The notes: generated from the letters alone by a model not told the origin. A stretch of DNA of 49,629 nt from Klebsormidium nitens (GCA_000708835.1 DF237583.1:1-49629); one strand, 5' to 3'. Counted from the first letter of the stretch, positions 247 to 49,488 are shown. Numbers and translations are program-made.

Positions 247-1440
247 ATGGCTGATTCCAGTGTTACCACCAGCATGACGATCAGTGTGAAGCGCAAGCAC
301 AGCCAGATAGATGATCCCAAGCAACTCGTGTGTGGATTTGCTGGCTGTGGCAAGGTGTTTACTAGCCAACGGTCATTCACACGCCACATGAACTCGCACT
401 CGGAGCAGTATGCGCCATTTTCGAGCTACCAGGGATGGAAGCAGCATTTCGAGTACAAGCATATTCACGGGCTCCCAGATGGCCGGGTCTGGAGCAGCAA
501 AGCCGGGCGCTTCTTGAATGGACACTTTCAGGGTGGTTACGTTCACTTGGGGATCGAAGGGAAGACTATCCAGCGCCACCGCTTGAACTTCGAGATCGCC
601 AACGGGCGTGCCATTCTTCCTGGGTTGGATATTGACCACATCGTCCCTTCAAAGACGCCGGACGACAGCTGGGCGAACCTGCAGGAGATTACACGGCCGG
701 AGCACAACATCAAGACTCGTGCGGACAATCCGGGGATGGCCAAGAAGTGTAGTGTGACCAAGGGCTTCCCAGTATTCGTACAGCACATTGCGAGCGGCAA
801 AGAGGATGAGTACGCTTCGATCAATGCTGCCGCTCGAGCGTTGGGGCTAAACGTGGCAGTGGTGGCGTTGCGTGCCAAAGAGGGGTCAAACACGGAGTAC
901 AAGGGATACGTGTTCCGCAGGTGCCCGGTGCACGTGGCCTCGCAGGCGGACAGGCCCGATGAAGAATGGATGGACGCGAAGCTTGAAGGGCGGGTTCTCG
1001 ATGGCATACGGGTCAGCAGCCTGGGCCGCGTCCAGCTTCGCCACGGGAGGCGCACGGAGGGCAAGATTGTGCATGGGCGGCACAAGGTCAATCTTCGGAT
1101 CGACGGGAAGGACGTTGAAGTCTTTGTCTACAATCTCATGGCCCACACGTTCATTGGACCGCCGCCCAGCAACAAGCACACGGTCGACCACATCGATGGA
1201 ATCTGCAACCACGACGTGATTGGCAACCTACGCTATGCGACCAAGATTGAGCAGGGGCGGAACATGAAGAACAACAGGGCCGTTAGCAAGCACGATCTCC
1301 AGGGGACGCTTTTGAAGACGTATGGCACCATGGCAGAGGCCGCCGAGGACAGCAATCTGTCTTACGAGCGGATGAAGTATGCAGTCAGGACGGCCCGCAG
1401 CACGGCAACCGGTTTCCAGTGGAAGTGTGTGAGGCAGTAG
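247..1440 (+). CDS. HNH homing-type endonuclease (C2H2 finger, two HNH domains, NUMOD1-like modules)
   Basis: CGFAGCGKVF..HMNSH finger; DIDHIV...WANLQEITRPEH and TVDHIDG...GNLRYAT HNH motifs; EYASINAAARALG and TYGTMAEAAE NUMOD1-like segments. Confidence 0.85.
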   Translation: MADSSVTTSMTISVKRKHSQIDDPKQLVCGFAGCGKVFTSQRSFTRHMNSHSEQYAPFSSYQGWKQHFEYKHIHGLPDGRVWSSKAGRFLNGHFQGGYVHLGIEGKTIQRHRLNFEIANGRAILPGLDIDHIVPSKTPDDSWANLQEITRPEHNIKTRADNPGMAKKCSVTKGFPVFVQHIASGKEDEYASINAAARALGLNVAVVALRAKEGSNTEYKGYVFRRCPVHVASQADRPDEEWMDAKLEGRVLDGIRVSSLGRVQLRHGRRTEGKIVHGRHKVNLRIDGKDVEVFVYNLMAHTFIGPPPSNKHTVDHIDGICNHDVIGNLRYATKIEQGRNMKNNRAVSKHDLQGTLLKTYGTMAEAAEDSNLSYERMKYAVRTARSTATGFQWKCVRQ

Positions 1441-4247: not shown

Positions 4248-4718
4248 GGCCCAATGGTCTTGAGACGCGACTTTCAGACCAATGCCGCGTCACCAGTCTA
4301 GGGGTCCGGCTCAACAGTCATGTAACGCGCGTTGTCTNNNNNNNNNNNNNNNNNNNNNNNNNNNNNNNNNNNNNNNNNNNNNNNNNNNNNNNNNNNNNNN
4401 NNNNNNNNNNNNNNNNNNNNNNNNNNNNNNNNNNNNNNNNNNNNNNNNNNNNNNNNNNNNNNNNNNNNNNNNNNNNNNNNNNNNNNNNNNNNNNNNNNNN
4501 NNNNNNNNNNNNNNNNNNNNNNNNNNNNNNNNNNNNNNNNNNNNNNNNNNNNNNNNNNNNNNNNNNNNNNNNNNNNNNNNNNNNNNNNNNNNNNNNNNNN
4601 NNNNNNNNNNNNNNNNNNNNNNNNNNNNNNNNNNNNNNNNNNNNNNNNCAATGAATCACGGCCCAATGGTCTTGAGACGCGACTTCAGTACTGGTGACGC
4701 GTCACCAGTCTAGGGGTC
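4248..4718. repeat. Direct repeat unit on both sides of an N gap, with a 20-bp palindrome
   Basis: GGCCCAATGGTCTTGAGACGCGACT at 4248 and 4659; GCGTCACCAGTCTAGGGGTC in both copies; perfect palindrome ACTGGTGACGCGTCACCAGT at 4690-4709. Confidence 0.85.
4338..4649. other. Assembly gap
   Basis: Run of N. Confidence 1.
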
Positions 4719-9346: not shown

Positions 9347-10534
9347 CTACTCAGTCTCTCTCTTGCGCTTTGCCTTCCTCTGCCTCGCACCCTTGGTTTG
9401 GCCCTGGTCCTCCCAGCTGTAGCCGTCATAGAACAGGTGCTCGACGGTCACTTCGCGTTCAGGCACGTGCGTGAGGTGGTAGTTCAGGCGCTCAAGGTAA
9501 ACCTTCATTCGTGCTTCCCACATGGCCTGATCCCTGATGACGGGCACCCCGAGCTTGTTGTACTTGAAGCAGCTCGGGTGCTTCAGGCCATCAGCAGATG
9601 TGAAGCTGTCTGGGTTGAAGCGCAGCTGCACCTGGGGCCGGTTGCCAGCATCCTGAAAGAGCTCCATGAGCCTCTTGTTGTCACAGGAGTAGTTGCTGGA
9701 AGAGTGCTGCTCCTCGTCGCACTCCGAGTGTACGGTGTGGGTGTACACATCGACGAAGATGTCCGGCCTCCGCGCCGAGCACCCCCCCTGAAGCTTCTTG
9801 TCGAAGGTGACCTGCGCCGTGTCTGGGAGAACGCCTGCTGCCTTGATGTGGTCAACGAAGTGTTGCTCCTTGATTTTGTAATTCCGAGAGACCTTCTCGT
9901 CTGGGAAAAGGAACACAAAGCAGCGAAGACAATAGCCCTTGTTGCGGTTCTGCACGATCGTGCTGCATCCGTTGAGACACTTGTTGTGCGCAACGTCCTC
10001 CATGCCCTCAGTCTTACAGTGTGCACAATGAGTGCGTGGACCACCTATGAGGCCAAAGCTCGGGATTCCCCTCTGGCAGAAGCACTTTTTAGTAACAACG
10101 TTAAGCATGTCCTCAGTTTTGCATATGGCACAATGGGTAGGCTGTCTCCACTTGAGCCCGAAGCTGGGCAGCTGTTGCCCACAGTAGCACTTCTTGTGAA
10201 CCAAGTCCACCATGCCTTCGCCCCTGCATTCGGCGCAGTGGGTGGGGCGCTCGTCTCTGAAGCCAAAGCTTGGCTGCCCGCGCCCGCACACACACGTTTT
10301 GTTTTTGACATCCACCATACCATCCAACTTGCAGCGGGCGCAATGTGTAGGACTCTTTCCACCATTCCCAAAGGTTGGCTGCCCTTGTTTGCATGCACAT
10401 CTCTTGTTCTTGACATCAATCATGCCCTCCAGCTTACACTTCAAACAGTGGGAGGGCTTGTTTCCTTCAAACCCAAAGGTAGGCCGAGCCCGCTTGCACC
10501 TGCACAAAGGCCTCTTCCGTTGTACTTTTTCCAT
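9347..10534 (-). CDS. EsV-1-7 Cys-rich repeat protein (5 x 35 aa) with C-terminal Vsr/PD-(D/E)XK-like endonuclease
   Basis: Repeats CxC...PxFG...PTHCxxCKxxGMxDV; then RRPDIF...SECDEEQH...QLRFNPD. Confidence 0.85.
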   Translation of the reverse strand: MEKVQRKRPLCRCKRARPTFGFEGNKPSHCLKCKLEGMIDVKNKRCACKQGQPTFGNGGKSPTHCARCKLDGMVDVKNKTCVCGRGQPSFGFRDERPTHCAECRGEGMVDLVHKKCYCGQQLPSFGLKWRQPTHCAICKTEDMLNVVTKKCFCQRGIPSFGLIGGPRTHCAHCKTEGMEDVAHNKCLNGCSTIVQNRNKGYCLRCFVFLFPDEKVSRNYKIKEQHFVDHIKAAGVLPDTAQVTFDKKLQGGCSARRPDIFVDVYTHTVHSECDEEQHSSSNYSCDNKRLMELFQDAGNRPQVQLRFNPDSFTSADGLKHPSCFKYNKLGVPVIRDQAMWEARMKVYLERLNYHLTHVPEREVTVEHLFYDGYSWEDQGQTKGARQRKAKRKRETE

Positions 10535-10743
10535 ACCGTTTGAGTATGAATCAGCAGTTTGTTTGTTCTTAAGCCAACGCACTCTCTGTCAAGCATTAGG
10601 CCCTCCTTGGCAAGCCTTGGCATGCAAGCCAATTGCTGGCACTGGTGGTGCCCTCTCTTGCCAGGGAGTGCCACCCGTTGCAGGAACAAAGAGTAAGAAA
10701 GTCGCCTTTGGTGCTTCATTTTCAAAATACTCCAAGCGCCAAG

Positions 10744-11274
10744 ATGATGCTCTTCATCGGACCTTTGGTGGATCTCTGGCCAGTCAGGCGCTATGCGTAC
10801 GCACACAGCGATTTCATCTATGTCGATGGCCTGCCCAAGAGCAGGTACTTTGAACCCAATCAAGCTGGTTGGCAGGTTTCAAAGGACAAGGAAACGATGG
10901 TATCCCACATCAGAGACAATCTGCAGTCTGACGATGCACTTGTCTCTGATGAAGAGCTTCCCAACGACGTGCACGTCTTCAGGCTGCAAGGTGGTGCCAA
11001 ACTCACGTACTACTTCAACAGATTGGACACCGACATACCCAGCGACCCACTTCTGAAGGACGTTCTGCCCCTGGTGACCGCCGTTTACATTCAAGGATGC
11101 CGGCCCAAGTTGCCACAATTGCCCCTTCTAAAAAGGTGCTACTACACTGGAGCTTGTAGTGATGTTGAGGTTCCAGAGTCTGTTCTGACCATCATAGTCC
11201 CTGAGGTGGATGACAATCTTGAATATTCTCACGAAATAAGGTGTGATTATTGCGAGGAGACTATTGAGCTGTAG
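10744..11274 (+). CDS. Hypothetical protein
   Basis: Open frame filling the interval; no motif recognised. Confidence 0.5.
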   Translation: MMLFIGPLVDLWPVRRYAYAHSDFIYVDGLPKSRYFEPNQAGWQVSKDKETMVSHIRDNLQSDDALVSDEELPNDVHVFRLQGGAKLTYYFNRLDTDIPSDPLLKDVLPLVTAVYIQGCRPKLPQLPLLKRCYYTGACSDVEVPESVLTIIVPEVDDNLEYSHEIRCDYCEETIEL

Positions 11275-12154
11275 AGAGGATTGGGGCGGAACTCTGCTTT
11301 CCAGCTTGTGCGTCCAGAGCAAGGGAGTCATTCGCCGCGTCGAGTGCTTGATCCTCCCCTGGTGCCAACAAGCACTGAATGTACACTCTCAGTGTGTGAT
11401 AGTGGAGGTCAATTGGGTCATAGATTCCAAAAAGCCGCCGCAAAGCATGTTTCAAGAAGAAAATCCAGTCTCTCATACCGTGCGGTCCTTGTAAAGTGCA
11501 CTCTGTTGGCACGTGCGCGTACATGGAAAGATGCCGGGGGATGGGATCAAACTTGTGAGAGACTCTGATCGAAGTCTTCACCCTTTCTGCAAAGCGGATT
11601 ATAAAGGTTGCATTGCCCAGAGGAGGCGAACCGAAAGTGACGCATCTAATCCTTGCGTCTGGGAACTCGCGGGTCATGTCGTAAGCACAGAGCGTCGCAA
11701 TTGCCCCTCCACTAGAGTGGCCCGTGCACGTGATTGCTGCATTCGGGTGGTCATTGAGGAACGTTCTCACAAGTTCGACACATTTTGGAGCATATCGGGC
11801 GTACCTCTGGCAGAAGCCCCTGTGAACAAACACTCCGGGGTCCATCTCGGACGCTGGATGCTCGCGAAGAAGGTCGAGGTCCTCACATACGTCAGAGAAA
11901 TCGGCCGTTCCTCTGAAAGCCAAGACGATCTCGCGCTCGAGTTTCAAACAGATGAAGCCTTCTGCAACGGTCTGAATGTCAGTCACATCTATCTTGCACT
12001 CTTCTGGAAGCCCTTCACTTGTATAGGCGAGCCACGAGTAAGCTGCACATGCAAGGACGGTAGACATTGACGGACGTACTATCACCGTCAGCGCGAAAAA
12101 ATCTCGCACGTATTCAGGTGCAGCTGTTGCTGGTGCTGGAGCATCGTTGGGCAT
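11261..12154 (-). CDS. Class 3 lipase
   Basis: IVLAFRGT, VHRGF, ITCTGHSSGGAIA, TFGSP, RVSHKFDPIP. Confidence 0.9.
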   Translation of the reverse strand: MPNDAPAPATAAPEYVRDFFALTVIVRPSMSTVLACAAYSWLAYTSEGLPEECKIDVTDIQTVAEGFICLKLEREIVLAFRGTADFSDVCEDLDLLREHPASEMDPGVFVHRGFCQRYARYAPKCVELVRTFLNDHPNAAITCTGHSSGGAIATLCAYDMTREFPDARIRCVTFGSPPLGNATFIIRFAERVKTSIRVSHKFDPIPRHLSMYAHVPTECTLQGPHGMRDWIFFLKHALRRLFGIYDPIDLHYHTLRVYIQCLLAPGEDQALDAANDSLALDAQAGKQSSAPILSTAQ

Positions 12155-12350
12155 GTTGCCTCAGCTGCTCGTAGGCGGCATAGTGCTGGTACTCGGTTTT
12201 GTCATCTATGCTAGAGAGTCAAAGAAACTCAAGCAACAGCAGAGTCGATTCAGGCTGTACTTTGGGCTGGCTGTCATGCTGCTTGGCAGTATCATAGGGC
12301 TCGGTCTTGGTGCGGGCTTTACATTTCACCAATTGATGGATCAGGTGTAA
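12153..12350 (+). CDS. Small two-TM membrane protein
   Basis: Two hydrophobic helices separated by a basic loop. Confidence 0.55.
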   Translation: MLPQLLVGGIVLVLGFVIYARESKKLKQQQSRFRLYFGLAVMLLGSIIGLGLGAGFTFHQLMDQV

Positions 12351-12378: not shown

Positions 12379-12987
12379 CTATCCTGCAGTGCTTGCGATC
12401 GCACTGCACACGTTCCAGGAAGAGGTCGCCTCACTGTAGCTTTGAAACAGTAGAGCGCCCTTCGTTGCAAGGATGCGCCAAGAGCCATCGGCTTTTGGCC
12501 CAAACATTACAGCGTTGACGTCATCAGACGAAAGATCCACTGTTTCGCCATTGTTCTGGACAACAATTGTGGTCTGTGGGGCGAGCTTCTCGCTTGTCAC
12601 GGCCCCAGGTGCAATGTTTGCACTTCCCACGGCGTTTGTCCCGAGGAGAATCTTGATCTTGGCCCACGAGCTGCTGTTGTCCCCCAAACCAGGCCCAAGG
12701 AAGACGTACGTGTCCCCAGCATGCGCAAGGCTGCTGTCCGATTGCGGGGCGAAGCCGGGATAGCTCAGCAGCCCCCCTCGAGCAACCCCAAAGTAGTCAC
12801 CCACGACACGCCCAGCAGTGTTGTTTTCCAGGAGAGGATTCGGGCTCGGATCGCTCACATCTACATCGCCCAGCCATCTCTTTGTTGGCAAGGTCAGCGT
12901 GCCACTCGTTGCCCCGGAAGACGTCCCCGGAGCATTGATGCCGGGGTCATCATCGAACTCATTCAACAGCTGGTTGAACAAGCTCAT
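12379..12987 (-). CDS. Putative virion structural/fibre-associated protein
   Basis: NIAPGAVTSEKLA fibre-type motif and C-terminal DGSWRI...LLFQSY...W motif. Confidence 0.5.
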   Translation of the reverse strand: MSLFNQLLNEFDDDPGINAPGTSSGATSGTLTLPTKRWLGDVDVSDPSPNPLLENNTAGRVVGDYFGVARGGLLSYPGFAPQSDSSLAHAGDTYVFLGPGLGDNSSSWAKIKILLGTNAVGSANIAPGAVTSEKLAPQTTIVVQNNGETVDLSSDDVNAVMFGPKADGSWRILATKGALLFQSYSEATSSWNVCSAIASTAG

Positions 12988-13257
12988 GGCGGGCACAGTA
13001 CCCCCCTGAAGGACGGCTGCAAATTTGGATCTTCTTTTTTCCGTGCTAGCACTCCGCAGACTCCTTCTTGCTGACCCCTTTGTCAAGCTCTCTCTTGTTG
13101 TCGAGGCTTGTGCTTCTGTGCATCTTTGTCATACCTCTTGTCAGCTCCTTCAGCTGCATGGCATGTTGATTGGAAGGCTGTGGTGCAAGATGTCTGGTGC
13201 GAACGTGTACTTAAGGTTAAAGAGTCTCTTAAAACTTACCAACGTTTCAAAGAGGCA

Positions 13258-14730
13258 ATGGCAGGCAAGCGGAAGAGGAGTGGACAGCTTTGCGTCACCA
13301 ACGCATGCACGAAGGTAGCGCGCAGCAAGAGTAAGCATTGTGTAGAGCATGGTGGAGGCCGTCGCTGCCTGAGTAACGGTTGCATAACAATTGCACGGGG
13401 CCAGACGGATTATTGTGTGAAGCATGGAGGCGGCCGCCGATGCCTCACTGAAGGATGCAAAAGGTCGGCACAAGGCACAACAGATCACTGTAAAAAGCAC
13501 GGGGGCGGTCGCCGCTGTCGGACCAATAAGTGCACAAAGTCGGCTGTTGGCAAGACAGATCACTGCGTGGAGCACGGAGGCGGCCGCCGTTGCCTGACAG
13601 AAGGATGCACAAAGTCGGCTGCTGGCAAGACAGACCATTGCGTAGAGCACGGAGGCGGCCACCGGTGCCTGACAGAAGGATGCACAAAGTCGGCTGCTGG
13701 CAAGACGGACCGCTGCATAGAGCACGGAGGCGGCCGCCGGTGCTTGACTGAGGGCTGCAAGAAGTCTGCACAGGGCAAGACAGACCACTGCATAGAGCAC
13801 GGAGGCGGCCGCCGGTGCCTGACTGAGGGATGCACAAGAGGGGCACAGGGGAAGACGGACCACTGCATAGAGCACGGAGGCGGCCGCCGGTGCCTGACTG
13901 AGGGATGCACAAAAGGGGCACAGGGGAAGACGGACCACTGCATAGAGCACGGAGGTGGCCGACGGTGCCGGACCAGGGGTTGCACGAAAGCTGCACGGGG
14001 CAAAACGGACCACTGCGTGGAGCATGGGGGCGGCCGCCGTTGTGAGAGAAGCGGGTGCACAAAATCAGCAGCAGGCAAAACGGCGCACTGTGTAGAACAT
14101 GGGGGCGGCAGCCGGTGCCTGACCGATGGGTGCACAAAGTCGGCCGTTGGCATGACGGACCACTGTGTGGAGCACGGAGGCGGGAATCGCTGCATTGTCT
14201 GCTCTGGAGTGTCCGTTCCTTTCTCTGGTGGGGCTTGCTACTCGTGCCGGTCTGGCACGTCTCTCAAGAAGTGGGAGACATTGACCACCCAATGGCTCCG
14301 CAACCTGGACTGGCCCTGGTCCTATAACGACGAGACGCTCCCGTGCGCCAATGCAATGTCTACACGGGACAAGTCGTGCATCAAGCGCCCCGACTACGTC
14401 TTCGTCTTTGAGACGCACGCTGTCATCCTTGAGGTCGACGAGAATTACCACCGCTACTACGAGATCTCGTGCGAAGTAGACCGCATGGGCAAAATCAAGG
14501 ATCTTGTGAGGCTCCCGCTGCACTTTGTGCGCTTCAACCCGGCCAAGACGCGCTACCCGCTCCTCAAAGACCTCCTCGAACGCCTCTTTCGGGACCCTGA
14601 AGGGGCACAGAACGCTGCAGGCGTTCTCGTGCACTTTGTTGGTTACCCAGAGGATAGGATTCAGGACCTCGAAGATCAGGAGGAGTTCTGTTATGAGTAC
14701 GAGAGGATTGCATGCAGGGCTGCGATGTAG
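13258..14730 (+). CDS. WRKY19-like CCCH zinc-finger array (12 x 25 aa) fused to a Vsr/PD-(D/E)XK-like endonuclease
   Basis: Repeat RRCLTEGCTKSAxGKTDHCVEHGGG; then KRPDYVF...ILEVDENYH...VRFNP. Confidence 0.9.
   Translation: MAGKRKRSGQLCVTNACTKVARSKSKHCVEHGGGRRCLSNGCITIARGQTDYCVKHGGGRRCLTEGCKRSAQGTTDHCKKHGGGRRCRTNKCTKSAVGKTDHCVEHGGGRRCLTEGCTKSAAGKTDHCVEHGGGHRCLTEGCTKSAAGKTDRCIEHGGGRRCLTEGCKKSAQGKTDHCIEHGGGRRCLTEGCTRGAQGKTDHCIEHGGGRRCLTEGCTKGAQGKTDHCIEHGGGRRCRTRGCTKAARGKTDHCVEHGGGRRCERSGCTKSAAGKTAHCVEHGGGSRCLTDGCTKSAVGMTDHCVEHGGGNRCIVCSGVSVPFSGGACYSCRSGTSLKKWETLTTQWLRNLDWPWSYNDETLPCANAMSTRDKSCIKRPDYVFVFETHAVILEVDENYHRYYEISCEVDRMGKIKDLVRLPLHFVRFNPAKTRYPLLKDLLERLFRDPEGAQNAAGVLVHFVGYPEDRIQDLEDQEEFCYEYERIACRAAM
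13291..14184 (+). repeat. 75-bp coding tandem repeat, 12 units
   Basis: Unit approx. CGCCGGTGCCTGACTGAGGGATGCACAAAG...GACCACTGCATAGAGCACGGAGGCGGC. Confidence 0.95.
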
Positions 14731-14740
14731 ACACCCCCTG

Positions 14741-15751
14741 CTAGCTCTCTTGTGGGTCCTTGAACAGATAATATGCGGCTGAACCGAGACCCACGAGAGC
14801 AGCCGCCGCAACCACCTTCTTTCCCACTCCCGAATCCTTTTCTGGCAGTGGCTCTTTTGCTCTGATTGTTGGTACCAACGGAGCGCTGAGCGTCACTGGC
14901 TTGCAAACAGGTTGCTGTGAGCTTAGAATGTCATTTTTGAAAGCCATTGCGAGCTGCACGACCTCCAGAGTCAGGCTGTGGTCCAGGCCGTCCGGTAGGT
15001 AAGCGCGGCCCTTGTCATTGACAAGTCTCATTGTCACGCGGTCTAGCTTGATTGGTTGGAAGTAATTGTGGAGCATGTCACATGCATCGGCATAGTAGTA
15101 CTTGATGGAGCCCGTTACACAATCTAAAGGAACTCTGGCAAGCACGTTCCTCACCTGCATAGCCCCGTTCTGCCTCGAAACCACGCGCTTTGCAGCTATG
15201 CTTGGGAGATTCTCCATCACAAAGTCAACAAACAGAGATGAGGCCAGGTTCACATGCCCACCGGCCGTTTGCACGAGGCCGAAGCTGGTATCAGCCACGG
15301 TGAAGCCCAAGAGTGGTGCTAGACTGTTCTCTGCATTCGGACCACTCCCAAACAGGAGCTTGAAAGGCACCGCGTTCCTGCCGTTTGCCGTGATCGAGAT
15401 CTTGTTGCTCACCGAGTCTATTGCTGCGAGGTACGTGTTCTTCCAGAGGCCAGATGCGAGTGCGACATTCAAAAGGTAGACAAACGACTTGGCAGACACG
15501 TTCCCGGGGTCTAGGCAAATGCTGAAGATTGCCGGGCTGCCCTGCTCGGAAAAGTCCAACCAGCACGCCTGTTCGTTGATGACAGGCATGCTCTTGGGGA
15601 ACACGCACTGTACCAGGGACACGCCAACGACGTCGTTCAGAACTTCTGGCAGCACAATCTCGTACCGTGCTGCCGATGGGTAACGTGCCATGTCCCTGTC
15701 TGCCGAGTCGATGATGAGGTGGCTCCTTAGGATCTTTCGAACAGCAGCCAT
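14741..15751 (-). CDS. NCLDV DUF5901-like putative minor capsid/structural protein
   Basis: Likely start MAAVRK; LIIDSADRD..RYP...YEIVLPEVLNDVVGVSL N-terminus, YFQPIKLDRVTMRLVNDKG, C-terminal TM. Confidence 0.6.
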   Translation of the reverse strand: MAAVRKILRSHLIIDSADRDMARYPSAARYEIVLPEVLNDVVGVSLVQCVFPKSMPVINEQACWLDFSEQGSPAIFSICLDPGNVSAKSFVYLLNVALASGLWKNTYLAAIDSVSNKISITANGRNAVPFKLLFGSGPNAENSLAPLLGFTVADTSFGLVQTAGGHVNLASSLFVDFVMENLPSIAAKRVVSRQNGAMQVRNVLARVPLDCVTGSIKYYYADACDMLHNYFQPIKLDRVTMRLVNDKGRAYLPDGLDHSLTLEVVQLAMAFKNDILSSQQPVCKPVTLSAPLVPTIRAKEPLPEKDSGVGKKVVAAAALVGLGSAAYYLFKDPQES

Positions 15752-15808
15752 GCAATAGCCAAGGATTTGAACATGATAAGCTGATTGCTTTTCCTCTTTG
15801 TATATTGC

Positions 15809-16948
15809 ATGGCAGGCTGCAAGACATGCGAAGCACTCACTGTAAAGCGGACGCAGTGTAGAAAAGCGTCTGCTTGCATCAAGTACCCTGGAACCAGGTT
15901 TTGCTCCACTCATCAACCAGCGACTCACGCCGGGCCGCCCGTGCCTCCCACTGCCCCCGTGCATCCACGCCAGCCCCCAAGGGGAACCCCGGGGCGTAAG
16001 CGTCCACCCGTGACCCCAGTCCCTCCAGTGCGTCAGCGCCAGCCACCTGTGCGCCGTGTGCGCCCACCCAAGACTCCCATCTCCCGAGTGCATCCCCGCC
16101 AGCCTCCAGGTCCCTTTCTCGGGACGCCCCACTCTGGCATGACGAACCTGAACCTGAGCGCTCCCAGACAGCTCAACAAACCCGCCGTAGTCGATAACCT
16201 GGCACGGATCCGGTCTCAAGGATATTACGGCTTGGCATCTCATGGAAACCTTAATGGGAAAGCGTTCCGCGTCCCTGGGGACAAGATCATCGTTGTGATG
16301 ACAGCCCCTGGGGCGTCTATATACACCAGCATTGCAATCTGGCTGATGCAACACATGAACTTGGTTCAAGATGCAGAACGGGGGAACTTGAGCATGCTAA
16401 ACCGCCACATATACACAAGGACCTTCTTGCCCGGTGAGAAAATGCCCGATTTGGACTTGCAATTTAGGGACGATACCCGCTTACACGGTCTCTACAGGCT
16501 TCCGATGTCAAAAGATCAGGGTACGATCAACCCAACCGCAGCTCATCGGGCACAACATGGTGCCAACGACATCCTTTCAACGTTTGACTCAGCATACGTT
16601 CCAGGTAATTACGTCACCAAGCTGAAATTGTTGATGCATCATCATCTTCCATCAGGGGTGTATTTGATCACGTCATGCCGTGACAGGGACGATGTTGGGT
16701 CTGGCAAGTTGCGTAAGATCCAAGACTTGAATTTCAGACGGACATTTGCACAGTTCACCGGAGCCGACCCGAATCCTCCTGAGAGGCCGCCGAGGACGAG
16801 AGCCGAAATACGCAAGTACGAAGCAGATCTGGAATTGATCTCCAGGTGGTGCGTTTCGGAACTGCATAAGGACAAGTTCGACGAGATCCAACGCAAAATC
16901 AACGACCTCAAGAGAAGGATCACCGGTGCACGGAGACCGCGGCGCTAG
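15809..16948 (+). CDS. Protein with N-terminal Cys/His knuckle, Pro/Arg-rich linker and possible peptidase-like (SHG...SCR) domain
   Basis: CEALTVKRTQC...C.....FCSTH; repeated PVHPRQPP; YGLASHG..FRVPG and VYLITSCR. Confidence 0.55.
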   Translation: MAGCKTCEALTVKRTQCRKASACIKYPGTRFCSTHQPATHAGPPVPPTAPVHPRQPPRGTPGRKRPPVTPVPPVRQRQPPVRRVRPPKTPISRVHPRQPPGPFLGTPHSGMTNLNLSAPRQLNKPAVVDNLARIRSQGYYGLASHGNLNGKAFRVPGDKIIVVMTAPGASIYTSIAIWLMQHMNLVQDAERGNLSMLNRHIYTRTFLPGEKMPDLDLQFRDDTRLHGLYRLPMSKDQGTINPTAAHRAQHGANDILSTFDSAYVPGNYVTKLKLLMHHHLPSGVYLITSCRDRDDVGSGKLRKIQDLNFRRTFAQFTGADPNPPERPPRTRAEIRKYEADLELISRWCVSELHKDKFDEIQRKINDLKRRITGARRPRR

Positions 16949-23221: not shown

Positions 23222-23545
23222 CGCGAGATGCCTCTTTCGTAAAGCGAGAACCGACCGCTCGTCCGCCCGGATCTTCCAGTGAACATGGTTGTGATTAACC
23301 CAATTGCCAAAGCTGGCATAGATCTGGTAGTCGGGCAGCTCTATAGCCTCCATGAAAGCAGCGACCTCTTGAAACGAAGCCCGAAGCTCTTCGCCCGAAA
23401 GATCGAGCGTCGAGGCCTTGTGTACATGTGGTGTGTAGATCAGAAGCGGCCGTCCCTTGAGATCAAAATGGAATCGCCCGTGCCTCCCATCCGCAATCAC
23501 CAGGCTGCGAGCATATTGTGTCAAGTGACAGGTGTAGCAACTCAT
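22982..23545 (-). CDS. HIT-like protein
   Basis: SCYTC N-terminus, LIYTPHVH, HNHVHWKI histidine triad; the tail overlaps the antisense gene. Confidence 0.6.
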   Translation of the reverse strand: MSCYTCHLTQYARSLVIADGRHGRFHFDLKGRPLLIYTPHVHKASTLDLSGEELRASFQEVAAFMEAIELPDYQIYASFGNWVNHNHVHWKIRADERSVLALRKRHLASDRLFAQGGAHSTSNSREEHREVVSRQVGEAPQSEAAARAAAEGAPEEGGCAVSGMEHLGRIVRAVDGKGTEECLGRRG

Positions 23546-23602
23546 CAAAGGCCCACCGCGAATTTCGGGTTGAATTGGGTGGAGAAAATCAGCAGCTCTG
23601 AT

Positions 23603-25372
23603 ATGGCGCAGCGGTGGCTCGCATGGCGCTCGTGGTTTGGGCCGCCTCTCATCACCGCGGCATACCTGGGTGTTGCCCAGTTTGGAAGGCTCCTGGTGGA
23701 CAGCAAGACCCATAGTGCGTCCGTCTGGCCTCCTTCTGGGGTTGGCCTGGCAGCTGCTCTCCACTTTGGCAGGCCATCAGCAGCTGTAGGCATTGCGGCC
23801 GGCTCACTATTGCATCTCCTCTTGATGTACCTGACGACCGAGAGGTACCACCGGACAATCTTCCTCGCAATCTCCCCAGCTTTTGCGGCAATCAACGTCC
23901 TGGAAGCTCTTGTGAACTGCACACTCATCCAGTTCGTATCAAAACAAAGGTCGGGGTGGTTTGAAACTTGGCGGGGAGCGGTCCTTTTCTTTCTTCCGAT
24001 CCCGTTCGCCCCCCTCGCATCTGCTTACCTCATTGCTTTCTTACTTGCCCTTGTCAATTTTGTCCCAACAGCTTACGTGGCCAAGTATGGTGCAGCAATA
24101 TGGCTGGGCCGCCTCGGTGGCATATATGCTTTCACGCCAGCACTGACAAACCCGTGGAACGGACTGTTTCGGATTCATCAATGGAAGGTGATGCTGACAT
24201 TTGCCGGCATTGCAGTAGTATTCTCATTCACTTTCATGAACGGTTGGGGGCTTATAACGTCTTCTCAACCACGACTGTTCATTTTTCCAGCCACTGCTAT
24301 GCTAGTTCTTGCAACACCTGCTTTGGGTAATCAGGAGGTCACTGGGGCAATCTTTCTCGCAATGGCCATGGTTATTGTCGGAACCGCCCGGGGGATGGGT
24401 CCATTCAGTGGCGACAACCACTCGCCAATCTTTTGGCTGACGTTGGAGCAGATCTACATATGCGTCACCAGTGCCAAGACGATCTGTATTGCAGCCTTGT
24501 CACGTGAAAAAGACGACAAGCACGTGCAACTGCAGAGGGTCAACGAGTTGCTCGAGACGCGGGTGCAGCACAGAACAAGCGAGTCAACGGCTGCGATTGA
24601 CCGTGCGGAGGAGGTTGGTCGGCAGAAGCTGGGATTCGTGAGGCATGTACGCGAAGAGATACGCGCGCCTCTGGTAGGGATCCAACGGCTGTGCTTTACT
24701 GAAAGCCCTCTCGACATTGACTCCCTCCGGGCACGGGTGGCCGGCACGGCAGAGCTGCTGGTCACCGTTCTGGACGACCTGGTCGACGTGGGGTACGGCG
24801 AAGGTGGCAGGCTGTGCTCTGAGATGCTGAAGTTTGAACCGGAGGCGCTCTTTAGGCGTGCACTGGACCTGGTCAGGCCGGATCTATCGAAGGTGGCCAC
24901 CCTTGAAGCTGACAAGGACCTTCCTCGGTATGCCGAAGGCGACATGAAGAAGCTGCAGCGCTGCCTGGTTGCGATGATCAACTGCTGCTGCACCGGTGAT
25001 GTGTGTTCGGTCCGGCTTGGCATCCTGTGCATGCCGCCCGAGATGATGGCGAACGGCGTCCATTCCCGCCACAGGCTGTGGATACGCTTCGAGGTGCATG
25101 CAGAGCCTCACGGGGGGCAAGCAACGGACCTCGAGGGCGGCTGGGTGCTCAACCCATACGATCCAAAAACCTCTGTGGATGACCGCCCCGTGGTGCTAGC
25201 TGACGAGATGGGTGGACGGCTCTTCCGAGCCCGCGACGGCCTCAGTGCAAGGCTGGAGGTCCCTTTAAGACGCACAATGGACAACAACTCCCTGGGGTCC
25301 AGTGTCCGCTTCCGTGAGGCCCGAGCGCAAGCCATTCTGGACGGGCTGGAGCTGAGCCCGCAGAAAGAGTAG
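23603..25372 (+). CDS. MASE1 sensor fused to a degenerate histidine-kinase core
   Basis: VWPPSGVGLAAAL MASE1 motif and many TMs. H-box reads VREEIRAPL (no His). GDMKKLQRCLVAMI lacks the N-box Asn. Confidence 0.75.
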   Translation: MAQRWLAWRSWFGPPLITAAYLGVAQFGRLLVDSKTHSASVWPPSGVGLAAALHFGRPSAAVGIAAGSLLHLLLMYLTTERYHRTIFLAISPAFAAINVLEALVNCTLIQFVSKQRSGWFETWRGAVLFFLPIPFAPLASAYLIAFLLALVNFVPTAYVAKYGAAIWLGRLGGIYAFTPALTNPWNGLFRIHQWKVMLTFAGIAVVFSFTFMNGWGLITSSQPRLFIFPATAMLVLATPALGNQEVTGAIFLAMAMVIVGTARGMGPFSGDNHSPIFWLTLEQIYICVTSAKTICIAALSREKDDKHVQLQRVNELLETRVQHRTSESTAAIDRAEEVGRQKLGFVRHVREEIRAPLVGIQRLCFTESPLDIDSLRARVAGTAELLVTVLDDLVDVGYGEGGRLCSEMLKFEPEALFRRALDLVRPDLSKVATLEADKDLPRYAEGDMKKLQRCLVAMINCCCTGDVCSVRLGILCMPPEMMANGVHSRHRLWIRFEVHAEPHGGQATDLEGGWVLNPYDPKTSVDDRPVVLADEMGGRLFRARDGLSARLEVPLRRTMDNNSLGSSVRFREARAQAILDGLELSPQKE

Positions 25373-30582: not shown

Positions 30583-31430
30583 TTTCAGGGGGGCAGCAAN
30601 NNNNNNNNNNNNNNNNNNNNNNNNNNNNNNNNNNNNNNNNNNNNNNNNNNNNNNNNNNNNNNNNNNNNNNNNNNNNNNNNNNNNNNNNNNNNNNNNNNNN
30701 NNNNNNNNNNNNNNNNNNNNNNNNNNNNNNNNNNNNNNNNNNNNNNNNNNNNNNNNNNNNNNNNNNNNNNNNNNNNNNNNNNNNNNNNNNNNNNNNNNNN
30801 NNNNNNNNNNNNNNNNNNNNNNNNNNNNNNNNNNNNNNNNNNNNNNNNNNNNNNNNNNNNNNNNNNNNNNNNNNNNNNNNNNNNNNNNNNNNNNNNNNNN
30901 NNNNNNNNNNNNNNNNNNNNNNNNNNNNNNNNNNNNNNNNNNNNNNNNNNNNNNNNNNNNNNNNNNNNNNNNNNNNNNNNNNNNNNNNNNNNNNNNNNNN
31001 NNNNNNNNNNNNNNNNNNNNNNNNNNNNNNNNNNNNNNNNNNNNNNNNNNNNNNNNNNNNNNNNNNNNNNNNACAGCAAGGGGACAGCAGGGGACAGCAA
31101 TGGGGTCAGCAAGGGGTACAGCGGATCATCAAGATCATCCCCTACATGATGCGACCATAGCACGGAGGCGCAGGTGATTTCGACCCCCTCCTATATTGAA
31201 GAAAGTGGTGTCTCAATTTTGGACATACTTTTGAAAGTTGTGCTCCATCTGCGCATCGTTGCAAGGCCGCAGTTAATCATAAATTCTGTCCCTGTCTCTG
31301 TCTCTGTCTCTTGGTGGTATGGTTTAATTACAGAGGTCATCGCAATCTGCTACAAAATCATCCTCTCCATGATGCGACGATAAACGGACGGGGGACAGCG
31401 ACTGGGGACAGCAGGGGACAGCAGAGCCTT
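30503..31430 (+). repeat. GGGGACAGCA-type satellite on both sides of the gap
   Basis: Copies at about 30503-30525, 30588-30599, 31073-31120 and 31391-31424. Confidence 0.8.
30600..31072. other. Assembly gap
   Basis: Run of N. Confidence 1.
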
Positions 31431-42899: not shown

Positions 42900-43273
42900 N
42901 NNNNNNNNNNNNNNNNNNNNNNNNNNNNNNNNNNNNNNNNNNNNNNNNNNNNNNNNNNNNNNNNNNNNNNNNNNNNNNNNNNNNNNNNNNNNNNNNNNNN
43001 NNNNNNNNNNNNNNNNNNNNNNNNNNNNNNNNNNNNNNNNNNNNNNNNNNNNNNNNNNNNNNNNNNNNNNNNNNNNNNNNNNNNNNNNNNNNNNNNNNNN
43101 NNNNNNNNNNNNNNNNNNNNNNNNNNNNNNNNNNNNNNNNNNNNNNNNNNNNNNNNNNNNNNNNNNNNNNNNNNNNNNNNNNNNNNNNNNNNNNNNNNNN
43201 NNNNNNNNNNNNNNNNNNNNNNNNNNNNNNNNNNNNNNNNNNNNNNNNNNNNNNNNNNNNNNNNNNNNNNNNN
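42900..43273. other. Assembly gap
   Basis: Run of N. Confidence 1.
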
Positions 43274-43737
43274 NTAAACGCACTTGTCCCCTGATTAGGG
43301 TTTACTGAGGACCCCTCCTCTTTAGCCATGTTCTGTATGTCACGCAGCCGATCCTTTAATGCAGCTACCTCATCTTGCAATCGAGAGCAATCTTGCCTAG
43401 ACCTCCTTGCTGCTTCCTCGCTCTCCTTCAGTCTCTCTGCCAGTACCCTACAATCGTCTCCTCTGTCCTTCAGCGCCACCTTCAACCTTTCACAATGTCC
43501 ATCAAGTACGTATATCTGCAGCTCGGTGACTAAGAATGAAGGCCCCTCTGCCAAGTCAATGACAGTCTGGTGATCCCCTCCTTGGGGCTGCTGTGCCATA
43601 GGCAAGGAAAGGGGTTGCATAGCAGAGGGATGATGTCCTGCTTGAGGCTGCTGAGAAGGTGCCGGAGAGAGGGGGCATGGGACGCCCATGACAAGCGGTT
43701 TGGGAAGGATGTGAGCGAACCGGCCAAACCTGGACAT
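43274..43737 (-). other. Coiled-coil coding fragment running into the gap
   Basis: CERLKVALKDR...LQDEVAALKDRLRDIQ heptads; incomplete. Confidence 0.35.
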
Positions 43738-48213: not shown

Positions 48214-49488
48214 ATGGCTTACAAGTGTCACTGCGGAACTCGGGCAAACTTCGGCATTGTTGGCGGTAGAGCCACGCGCTGCAAGAAGCACAAAGATGTG
48301 GGCATGGTAGACGTCAAGAATCGACGCTGCCGCTGTGGCAAGAGTCAGCCCTTTTTTGGATTCTTGGGAAAGAGAGCAGAGTGTTGTTCTGGGTGCAAGC
48401 TTCCCAACATGGTGGATGTGCGAAGCCCTCGTTGCAGATGCCGGAAGAGCCATCCAAGTTTTGGTTACGTGGGCAAGAGGCCCGAGTGCTGCTTGAAGTG
48501 TAGACTCCCCGAAATGGTTGCTCTTGACAGTCGTCGTTGTGCTTGCGGGCAAGCACGACCAAGTTTTGCACTCCACGGAGAGAAGGCAGGCTTTTGCGTG
48601 AAGTGCAAAACACCGGCAATGGTTGATGTGGTAAGTCCGCGTTGCCAGTGCGGGAAAGCTCAACCCAGCTTCGGCTTTCCAGGCAGTAAGGCCGCTTGTT
48701 GCACAGATTGCAAAAGTCCAGGGATGGTTAATGTTGTTAGCCCGCACTGTGCATGTGGTAAACATCAACCGCGCTTCGGGCTCCTCGGTGGGAGGGCAAC
48801 CTGTTGCAGCGAATGCAAAGAGGACGAGATGATAGATCTCACGCAACCTCGGTGCTCGTGTGGAGAGATCGCGTACTACGCGCTCGCGGGAGGCGAAGCG
48901 GTCTGTTGCAGAGGCTGCATGACACCTGATATGGTCCACACGAGGAAGCACACGTGCGTTGTCGGCTCTTGTGAGCCGATAAAGTCAGTGCGCTTTGCCA
49001 ACACGGCCTGTTACGAGTGTAGCGGAAAGGTCCCGCAAAAGATGTGGGAGCGCAAGGTTGTGAAGGAGTTGAAGCGCCTCGGTATCGAGTATAGCTATTA
49101 CGATGTGAGCGTCCCGTGCTCCCAGGCCAAGGGGATCAAAGCATTCCGGCCGGACCTCATATTTGCACTTCAGGACTTCGTGGTCATCCTCGAGGTGGAC
49201 GAGAACGAGCATCGGGCTTACGAGCTGTCGTGCGAGGTGGGGAGAGTTGGTGATATCAAGGATGCCATCGAGCTGCCCCTCCTCCTCATCCGCCTCAACC
49301 CCTCCGAGGCGCGCATCAAGGCACTGGGCGAGACAATGAAGTGGGCTTTCTCCATGGGAGAAGCTGTCAAGGCACAGGAAGCGGGGCTCATGCTTGCATA
49401 TCACGGGTACTCGGACAGCAGGAGGGCCGAGCTTCACGAGCAGATGGTCAGGCAGAACGGCTTTGCATACGAAACGATTGTTTTGTAA
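48214..49488 (+). CDS. EsV-1-7 Cys-rich repeat protein (7 repeats) with C-terminal Vsr/PD-(D/E)XK-like endonuclease
   Basis: CxCG..QPSFG...CCxxCK.P.MVDV repeats; FRPDLIF...VILEVDENEHRAYELSCE...IRLNP. Confidence 0.88.
   Translation: MAYKCHCGTRANFGIVGGRATRCKKHKDVGMVDVKNRRCRCGKSQPFFGFLGKRAECCSGCKLPNMVDVRSPRCRCRKSHPSFGYVGKRPECCLKCRLPEMVALDSRRCACGQARPSFALHGEKAGFCVKCKTPAMVDVVSPRCQCGKAQPSFGFPGSKAACCTDCKSPGMVNVVSPHCACGKHQPRFGLLGGRATCCSECKEDEMIDLTQPRCSCGEIAYYALAGGEAVCCRGCMTPDMVHTRKHTCVVGSCEPIKSVRFANTACYECSGKVPQKMWERKVVKELKRLGIEYSYYDVSVPCSQAKGIKAFRPDLIFALQDFVVILEVDENEHRAYELSCEVGRVGDIKDAIELPLLLIRLNPSEARIKALGETMKWAFSMGEAVKAQEAGLMLAYHGYSDSRRAELHEQMVRQNGFAYETIVL

Follow-up and report, generated by a model that had tools for sequence, protein, structure and literature searches.

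Nucleases with modular DNA-binding domains are already known. The R2 retrotransposon protein features N-terminal zinc fingers and a Myb domain, a CCHC knuckle, and a restriction-like endonuclease, so that zinc fingers provide the targeting for a PD-(D/E)xK nuclease with a small zinc knuckle in front of it. Engineered zinc-finger nucleases (ZFNs) and transcription activator-like effector nucleases (TALENs) join a tandem modular array to the FokI nuclease domain. Hjc, DUF2726, and DUF559 fall into a single PD-(D/E)xK clade, of which a homing endonuclease is also a member (PMC3424549). The gene described here is located at 13258-14730 of a 49,629-nt stretch from the alga Klebsormidium nitens (K. 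nitens; GCA_000708835.1, DF237583.1:1-49629), which is referred to as the window. The gene encodes a natural fusion of a twelve-unit zinc-finger array to a domain that is modeled as a PD-(D/E)xK-type nuclease and contains every acidic and histidine residue that is invariant in its family. The window is a giant-virus (Nucleocytoviricota) insert and the contig is algal with an integrated virus; giant-virus inserts in K. nitens have already been published (PMC5294986). The wider interest of the protein is the function that it suggests for two groups of cysteine-rich repeats, the WRKY19-like and the EsV-1-7 repeats.

The original prediction, made by a model from the DNA letters, described twelve CCCH repeats in register, and this description was borne out. 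The units are found at residues 12-311 with an exact spacing of 25 amino acids (75 nt), and unit i of the array starts at nt 13291+75(i-1). The Pfam model PF24906 (Zf_WRKY19) matches 12 stretches with a score of 183.9 bits, the curated cut-off being 27 (E 3.4e-55), and the C-x4-C-x10-C-x2-H-GGG spacing is exact in 12/12 units, which makes the array a member of Zf_WRKY19. Tandem Repeats Finder reports a period of 75 with a score of 709 and a period of 225 with a score of 802. As predicted, the three cysteines, the histidine, and the GGG are unchanged across all twelve units. The alanine of an xAy triplet and the arginine preceding the next cysteine are also constant in every unit. Each 25-residue unit features four invariant putative zinc ligands. 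The array is strongly basic (56 K+R vs 28 D+E, net charge +28, isoelectric point 9.25), in contrast to the nuclease part, which is acidic. An AlphaFold2 (AF2) model of five units, calculated with no metal, has a predicted local distance difference test score (pLDDT) of 89 and a predicted template modeling score (pTM) of 0.57. Its only regular structure is a beta-bridge from the residue before Cys1 to position 9. The invariant Ala10 is presumably buried, with residues 9 and 11 exposed on the same side. A Foldseek search of the array model against the PDB found nothing below E 1.

The array is followed by a Cys4 ribbon, which is assigned to the nuclease module and not to the array because it is conserved in family members that have no array. 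The C-terminal domain consists of the 165 amino acids after this ribbon and features the motifs RPD, LEVDENYH, CEVDR, and RFNP. The three motifs that had been named in the prediction were all located in the C-terminal part, with RPD at residues 377-379, LEVDENYH at 391-398, and RFNP at 425-428. Searches of Pfam (E up to 10), NCBIfam, and PHROGs gave no usable match to the domain, and sequence searches of the PDB, run both with the domain alone and with a profile of the family, returned only thioredoxins and ribosomal proteins, all spurious matches. An exhaustive HMMER scan identified 826 cluster representatives at E<=1e-3, 72 of them at E<=1e-10, and these are mostly from giant viruses. An alignment of 44 members features nine invariant residues (D69, E82, D84, E85, H88, E96, R99, R115, and P118), and all of their equivalents are present in the window protein (D379, E392, D394, E395, H398, E406, R409, R425, and P428). 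The AF2 model of the nuclease domain has a pLDDT of 91 and a pTM of 0.82. DSSP assigns to this model the core order alpha-beta-beta-beta-alpha-beta, which is the element order of the PD-(D/E)xK core fold. Nearly all of the top 50 sub-threshold Foldseek neighbors in the PDB are PD-(D/E)xK nucleases, including the R2 retrotransposon endonuclease, the cap-snatching endonucleases of arenaviruses and bunyaviruses, Bax1, EcoO109I, PspGI, EcoRII, BamHI, and McrC. R2 is the best of these neighbors (9nl2, E 2e-3, probability 0.87), a weak match with no sequence similarity. The window protein differs from R2 in that it has no reverse transcriptase and carries twelve tandem CCCH units, whereas R2 uses 1-3 C2H2 fingers. 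A Foldseek search against BFVD matched 29 giant-virus proteins at E<1e-3, down to 2e-8, with names such as 'Endonuclease', 'C2H2-type domain-containing', 'DUF559', and 'DUF2726'.

A few family members have weak Pfam matches to Hjc, DUF2726, and DUF559. The domain shares the motif order D ... E-x-D-x-x-x-H ... R ... R-F with the Vsr/DUF559/DUF2726 clade (I-Bth0305I, PDB 3r3p; PMC3424549). Membership in DUF559 was considered by aligning the family profile to that of E. coli YcjD with hhalign. The alignment pairs the expected motifs, but its probability is 2%, which is not significant, and DUF559 membership is not claimed because of this result. No significant profile match placed the window domain in the Vsr/DUF559/DUF2726 clade. 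We take the arrangement of D379, E392-V-D394-E395, and H398 to resemble the Vsr/DUF559 variant. On the basis of the model and the conserved residues we call the domain a PD-(D/E)xK-fold nuclease with a Vsr/DUF559-like motif arrangement, and not a DUF559 member. In this respect the protein differs from ZFNs and TALENs, as it is natural and its predicted nuclease is such a variant and not FokI.

The nuclease domain belongs to a modular family in which the arrays are exchanged. Among the top 150 of the 826 representatives, EsV-1-7 arrays are present in 39 and WRKY19 arrays in 24; others have C2H2 fingers, IBR-like cysteine motifs, or a MerR helix-turn-helix (HTH), and many are short proteins with only the ribbon and the nuclease. 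Giant-virus contigs in IMG/VR encode the nuclease domain at 80 loci, and a single contig can have as many as four of them. The arrays of these open reading frames (ORFs) consist of up to 12 EsV-1-7 units, of 5-10 C2H2 fingers that are confirmed by Pfam, or of 6-12 copies of a C-x-H-G-x4-C-x2-C unit for which Pfam has no model. The 83 nuclease-bearing ORFs from IMG/VR contain at most 2 units with WRKY19 spacing and never a WRKY19-type array. Giant-virus proteins named 'Endonuclease' or 'C2H2-type' (cedratvirus, pithovirus, AaV, HaV, and marseillevirus metagenome-assembled genomes) share the nuclease by structure and sequence; they differ in featuring other array types, some of which are real C2H2 fingers, and the WRKY19-type is a minority. 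In a FastTree phylogeny of the nuclease domain the array types were clustered, and the WRKY19 type alone needs at least 4 changes, a number that should be treated lightly given the long branches. The main argument for the function of the arrays comes from these fusions. The occurrence of one and the same nuclease on C2H2 arrays, on an HTH, and on these cysteine repeats argues that the repeats are DNA-targeting modules. An Ectocarpus Tc1/mariner transposase with an EsV-1-7 domain points in the same direction (PMC12477816).

The variation among the twelve units follows the original prediction in part. The twelve xAy triplets that it listed matched exactly when they were re-derived. The y residue (unit position 11) ranks first and the x residue third of the 25 columns by entropy, however, x and y together account for only ~21% of the summed entropy. 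The column entropies in the window array are 1.96 bits at y, 1.90 bits at the third residue after Cys1, 1.78 bits at x, 1.42 bits at the residue right after Cys1, and 1.28 bits at the residue after Cys3. The claim of position-restricted variation like that of transcription activator-like effectors (TALEs) did not hold. About 12 of the 25 positions vary, and the repeats are neither near-identical nor variable at only one or two residues, which is also a difference from ZFNs and TALENs, and a recognition code is only conjectural here. The units are old, with a DNA identity of 60-85%, and the only recent copies are units 5/6 (93%) and 8/9 (96%). Between the window repeats the proportion of synonymous differences (pS) is 0.60 and that of nonsynonymous differences (pN) is 0.18, giving an overall pN/pS of 0.30. 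At x and y this ratio is 1.0, not above 1, and with the five most variable positions set aside it is 0.16. The protein sequence of the array is therefore constrained, apart from a few positions that are free to vary or are diversifying. The ratio of nonsynonymous to synonymous substitution rates (dN/dS) in the nuclease is 0.08-0.21 between six orthologues, and both the repeats and the nuclease are under purifying selection.

The analysis of entropy and substitution at each position, which had been proposed as a check of the prediction, was extended to further arrays. Position 11 tops the pooled pN (0.58; pN/mean pS 1.13) and has the highest pN overall and in most of the seven arrays, which come from two lineages. 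It is followed in pooled pN/mean pS by positions 18 (0.89) and 4 (0.82), then by 24, 2, 9, and 7 (~0.65). Within-array entropy in ten nuclease-linked arrays gives the same order of positions as pooled pN. The alphabet of position 11 is narrow, mostly R, Q, V, and A in nuclease-linked arrays, and the residue is E, R, or Q in 99% of 990 plant units. This pattern is consistent with a small surface for recognition and, just as well, with an unconstrained patch on the surface.

Remodeling of the array and presence or absence of the gene were observed in a sister lineage. Its reference protein, P0243, consists of nine very regular WRKY19 units and a nuclease variant (hhalign 97.9%), and the cluster at 90% identity contains proteins with 9, 8, 7, and 4 units. 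The 8-unit gene is identical in two samples (L089, L090). The 7-unit gene of L092 matches the 8-unit gene at every nucleotide of the 73-codon leader, the last four units, and the 170 codons of the ribbon and nuclease; their differences are confined to units 1-4. In the 7-unit gene one different unit replaces two, and this unit differs from its nearest counterpart by A11R, I18A, and five synonymous changes. The remaining substitutions are I18K in unit 1 and T8A in the unit after the replacement. The first unit of the 4-unit protein is a hybrid of units 1 and 5.

The sister-lineage gene occupies two different intergenic sites. The gene order in L089 is A, block X (657 bp), the gene, and Y, while that in L091 is A, the gene, and X. 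Twenty giant-virus contigs with block X were found in IMG/VR, with the flanking gene Y present in ~17 of them and gene A in eight, and a tblastn search for the nuclease gene in these 20 contigs detected none. The 1263 bp of L089 that include the gene stand against 282 unrelated bp in L099 (3388-3670), and 1417 bp of L091 stand against 214 bp in L109, in which the empty-site intervals are 11057-11271 and 11942-12271. The insertion junctions are not clean. Gene-less alleles, which the prediction had proposed to examine, were located in the sister lineage only. From these gene orders and alleles, the sister-lineage pattern appears to be that of a free-standing mobile gene. In both strains block X contains 3-4 conserved copies of the motif ATGATAACAAAATGATAAC (L089 7780-7928, L091 3209-3748), which may be a promoter-like element or a protein-binding site.

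Presence or absence at a defined site was seen in this sister lineage, whereas the window's own lineage shows only differing contexts. The five orthologues of the window gene sit in differing neighborhoods, with loose synteny with L002. A DUF5901-type gene adjoins the array-nuclease gene in three loci: the window (14741-16369, minus strand), L005 (1521-3156), and L007 (2804-3505). In the window the two genes are tail-to-tail with 10 bp between the stop codons, and in L005 and L007 the DUF5901 gene is upstream on the same strand. This adjacency could be left over from synteny, or insertions may have occurred repeatedly next to the same conserved gene. K. nitens has at least 2 further WRKY19-type copies on other contigs (L001, L007), with dS above 1.5. 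Close relatives or empty sites in this lineage were sought among viral contigs, using the DUF5901 neighbor as query, and among metagenomes, using the nuclease domain of the window gene or the helicase flank of L003; these searches found nothing. Because no such relatives or sites turned up, the window copy itself can only be presumed to be mobile.

The explanation that we prefer, with moderate confidence, is that the array directs DNA binding, that the PD-(D/E)xK domain then cleaves, and that the gene behaves as a selfish mobile element. In the proposed mechanism the KRKR patch would carry the protein to the nucleus, and similar basic patches precede finger 1 in P0006 and P0080. The basic array of 12 one-zinc CCCH modules would lie along the DNA and account for the larger part of target recognition. 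The Cys4 ribbon and the PD-(D/E)xK core (D379, E392/D394/E395, H398) would cut nearby with a divalent metal. The gene would belong to a large group of free-standing nuclease genes, probably selfish and homing-like, that retain the catalytic module while exchanging or remodeling the N-terminal array. The sporadic presence and absence in the sister lineage resembles that of a free-standing homing gene. The window gene differs from those of homing endonucleases in that it is not inside an intron or intein. Several points weigh against this explanation. A Foldseek search of the nuclease model against the PDB found nothing below E 1e-3 (best 2e-3), the comparison to the DUF559 protein YcjD was not significant, and the canonical lysine of (D/E)xK is absent even though D379, E392-V-D394-E395, and H398 are present. 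CCCH fingers of other families often bind RNA, and the endogenous copy may lack expression. The evidence for mobility is limited to the sister lineage, the array alleles come from short-read metagenome assemblies, and the window's own lineage adds only different gene contexts with partial conservation of the neighborhood. In one related giant-virus contig (L105 9500-11758, minus strand) the X|Y site is occupied instead by an unrelated gene, whose 752-aa product has a long Pro-Thr linker, and the region may therefore simply be variable.

The main rival, which is possible though doubtful, is that the array is a non-specific tether to DNA or chromatin or a protein-protein adaptor, with any specificity residing in the nuclease and the protein acting in bulk degradation of host DNA, recombination, or junction resolution. 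The spread of variation over ~12 positions, with a pN/pS of ~1 at the most variable ones, fits unconstrained surface residues, and short family members with no array exist. Plants conserve similar arrays with no nuclease, some members have weak Pfam matches to the junction resolvase Hjc, and a related '2-cysteine adaptor' motif has no assigned function (PMC6163548). Against such a tether or adaptor, the same nuclease is fused to C2H2 arrays and to a MerR HTH, which are typical sequence-specific readers, the narrow alphabet of position 11 consists of residues of the base-reading type, and sporadic presence and absence suits a selfish gene better than a core replication enzyme. A stronger form of array-directed binding is that the WRKY19-type and EsV-1-7 units are new modular DNA-reading fingers, each reading a fixed few bases through positions 11 and 18 (with 4 and 9), and that giant viruses carry hundreds of array nucleases that are retargeted by repeat replacement. 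Such a per-repeat code is supported circumstantially by the alphabet of position 11, by the allele substitutions at 11 and 18, and by the repeat replacement, and we regard it as unlikely.

Two further rivals are given little weight. It is improbable that the window copy is a silent relic of an endogenized virus with no present function in the alga. The gene does lie where a giant virus has integrated into the K. nitens genome, its three copies in this alga diverged long ago (dS above 1.5), and on this account the selection signal would reflect the history of the viral lineage and not current use. However, the ORF is intact with all invariant residues, the neighboring viral ORFs are long and open, and the proposal concerns expression and not what the protein does. 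The least probable of the rivals is that the CCCH array binds RNA and that the protein acts on RNA or on RNA-DNA hybrids. It draws on the many CCCH fingers that bind RNA and on the cap-snatching RNA endonucleases among the fold neighbors, but the units differ in spacing and fold from the CCCH fingers known to bind RNA, and no relative of the array model was found in the PDB. Additionally, the sister architectures carry DNA-binding domains, and the closest fold neighbors are mostly DNA nucleases.

The repeats of the window array are also found in proteins that have no nuclease. A search with the array region found 2254 proteins, of which the best matches are conserved land-plant proteins of ~600-650 aa that are 52-62% identical over most of the array and are named 'WRKY19-like zinc finger domain-containing' or 'loricrin-related' (AT5G64550-like). 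Dinoflagellate and labyrinthulid proteins rank after those of land plants, and among the matches listed a nuclease is present only in P0243. Because land plants keep conserved arrays of the same repeat with no nuclease, the repeat is not in itself a nuclease-targeting device. EsV-1-7 proteins, such as IMM from Ectocarpus, share the C-x4-C ... C-x2-H skeleton, and in hhalign the WRKY19 and EsV-1-7 unit profiles align over this skeleton with a probability of 55%. The brown-alga proteins have no nuclease, while EsV-1-7 units are fused to the same nuclease in the viral family of the window gene. The literature describes EsV-1-7 only as a possible new zinc finger; no paper in the literature searched mentions Zf_WRKY19 or PF24906, and none links EsV-1-7 to a nuclease. 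Separately, the window array is about as close to the land-plant arrays as to the arrays of the viral orthologues, which hints at a host-virus exchange of the array in streptophytes.

If the arrays target DNA, the domain-fusion argument would provide the first testable biochemical function for the EsV-1-7 and WRKY19-like repeats. Each brown-alga genome carries EsV-1-7 genes by the hundreds, among them that of the developmental regulator IMM, and WRKY19-like fingers are conserved across land plants. The same result would define a large giant-virus nuclease family that has no model in Pfam, NCBIfam, or PHROGs and that appears to be mobile or selfish, and such a family would bear on the remodeling of giant-virus genomes and their endogenous copies. 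If the repeats read DNA in a modular way, the family would be a natural library of array/nuclease pairs on which specificity could be studied, a counterpart of ZFNs and TALENs, and would give a biochemical handle on the EsV-1-7 families of brown algae and the WRKY19-like proteins of plants.

Table 1. Coordinates in the window of the array-nuclease gene, its parts, and its two paralogues
Feature	Position	Strand	Basis or remark
Whole gene, array-nuclease fusion	13258-14730	+	Intact 490-aa ORF, ATG to stop
KRKR basic patch	13267-13278	+	Possible nuclear localization signal, from its sequence
Array, 12 CCCH units C-x4-C-x10-C-x2-H-GGG-x-R, 75 nt each	13291-14190	+	Pfam, register
Cys4 zinc ribbon, C-x2-C-x11-C-x2-C	14191-14247	+	Conserved in array-less family members
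PD-(D/E)xK-like nuclease core	14248-14727	+	Family-invariant residues, AF2 model, Foldseek
Core motif RPD	14386-14394	+	
Core motif LEVDENYH	14428-14451	+	
Core motif CEVDR	14470-14484	+	
Core motif RFNP	14530-14541	+	
Paralogue, 6 EsV-1-7 repeats and same nuclease domain	48214-49488	+	
Second paralogue, 4 EsV-1-7 repeats and divergent nuclease	9347-10582	-	RRPD ... ECDEEQH ... RFNP

The C-terminal part of the protein is 100% identical to the K. nitens 'hypothetical virus protein' P0001. The public gene model of P0001 is 414 aa, with 76 aa (three repeats) removed as an intron. The genomic ORF runs uninterrupted through the stretch that this model splices out, and because the underlying ORF is continuous the intron is probably a gene-prediction artefact within the repeat. 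A TTG start upstream at 13108 was rejected in favor of the ATG at 13258 because the virus is eukaryotic and the K. nitens model starts at that ATG; additionally, P0002 aligns from its own first finger, which is just downstream. Minus-strand ORFs over the array (13150-14025, 13445-14137, and 13560-14195) were taken as by-products of the repeat periodicity. A search for terminal inverted repeats around the gene gave one 17-nt pair with 88% identity (12828-12844 / 14829-14845), which was taken as chance because it sits within the neighboring ORFs.

The window contains three array-nucleases within 50 kb, which are distant paralogues. On the nuclease tree the 6-repeat paralogue lies far from the array-nuclease gene at 13258-14730, and its nuclease is 35-38% identical to those of the WRKY19 type in the window and at related loci. 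In the 4-repeat paralogue the EsV-1-7 repeats were identified by Pfam, and the nuclease aligns to the family profile with an hhalign probability of 96.6%. Other neighboring ORFs encode PCNA, a patatin, a GH10 xylanase, a lipase, DUF5901 and DUF5871 proteins, a UvrD-type helicase, and an HNH endonuclease. Three dips in GC content along the window are runs of N (assembly gaps) at 4338-4648, 30600-31072, and 42900-43274. A 397-aa ORF at 247-1440 (plus strand) features an HNH_3 endonuclease domain, an I-HmuI NUMOD-like domain, and a C2H2 finger, and is a second kind of homing-type endonuclease within the viral region. A 697-aa ORF in the same viral region, at 23279-25372 (plus strand), contains MASE1, a membrane sensor domain that is usually bacterial.

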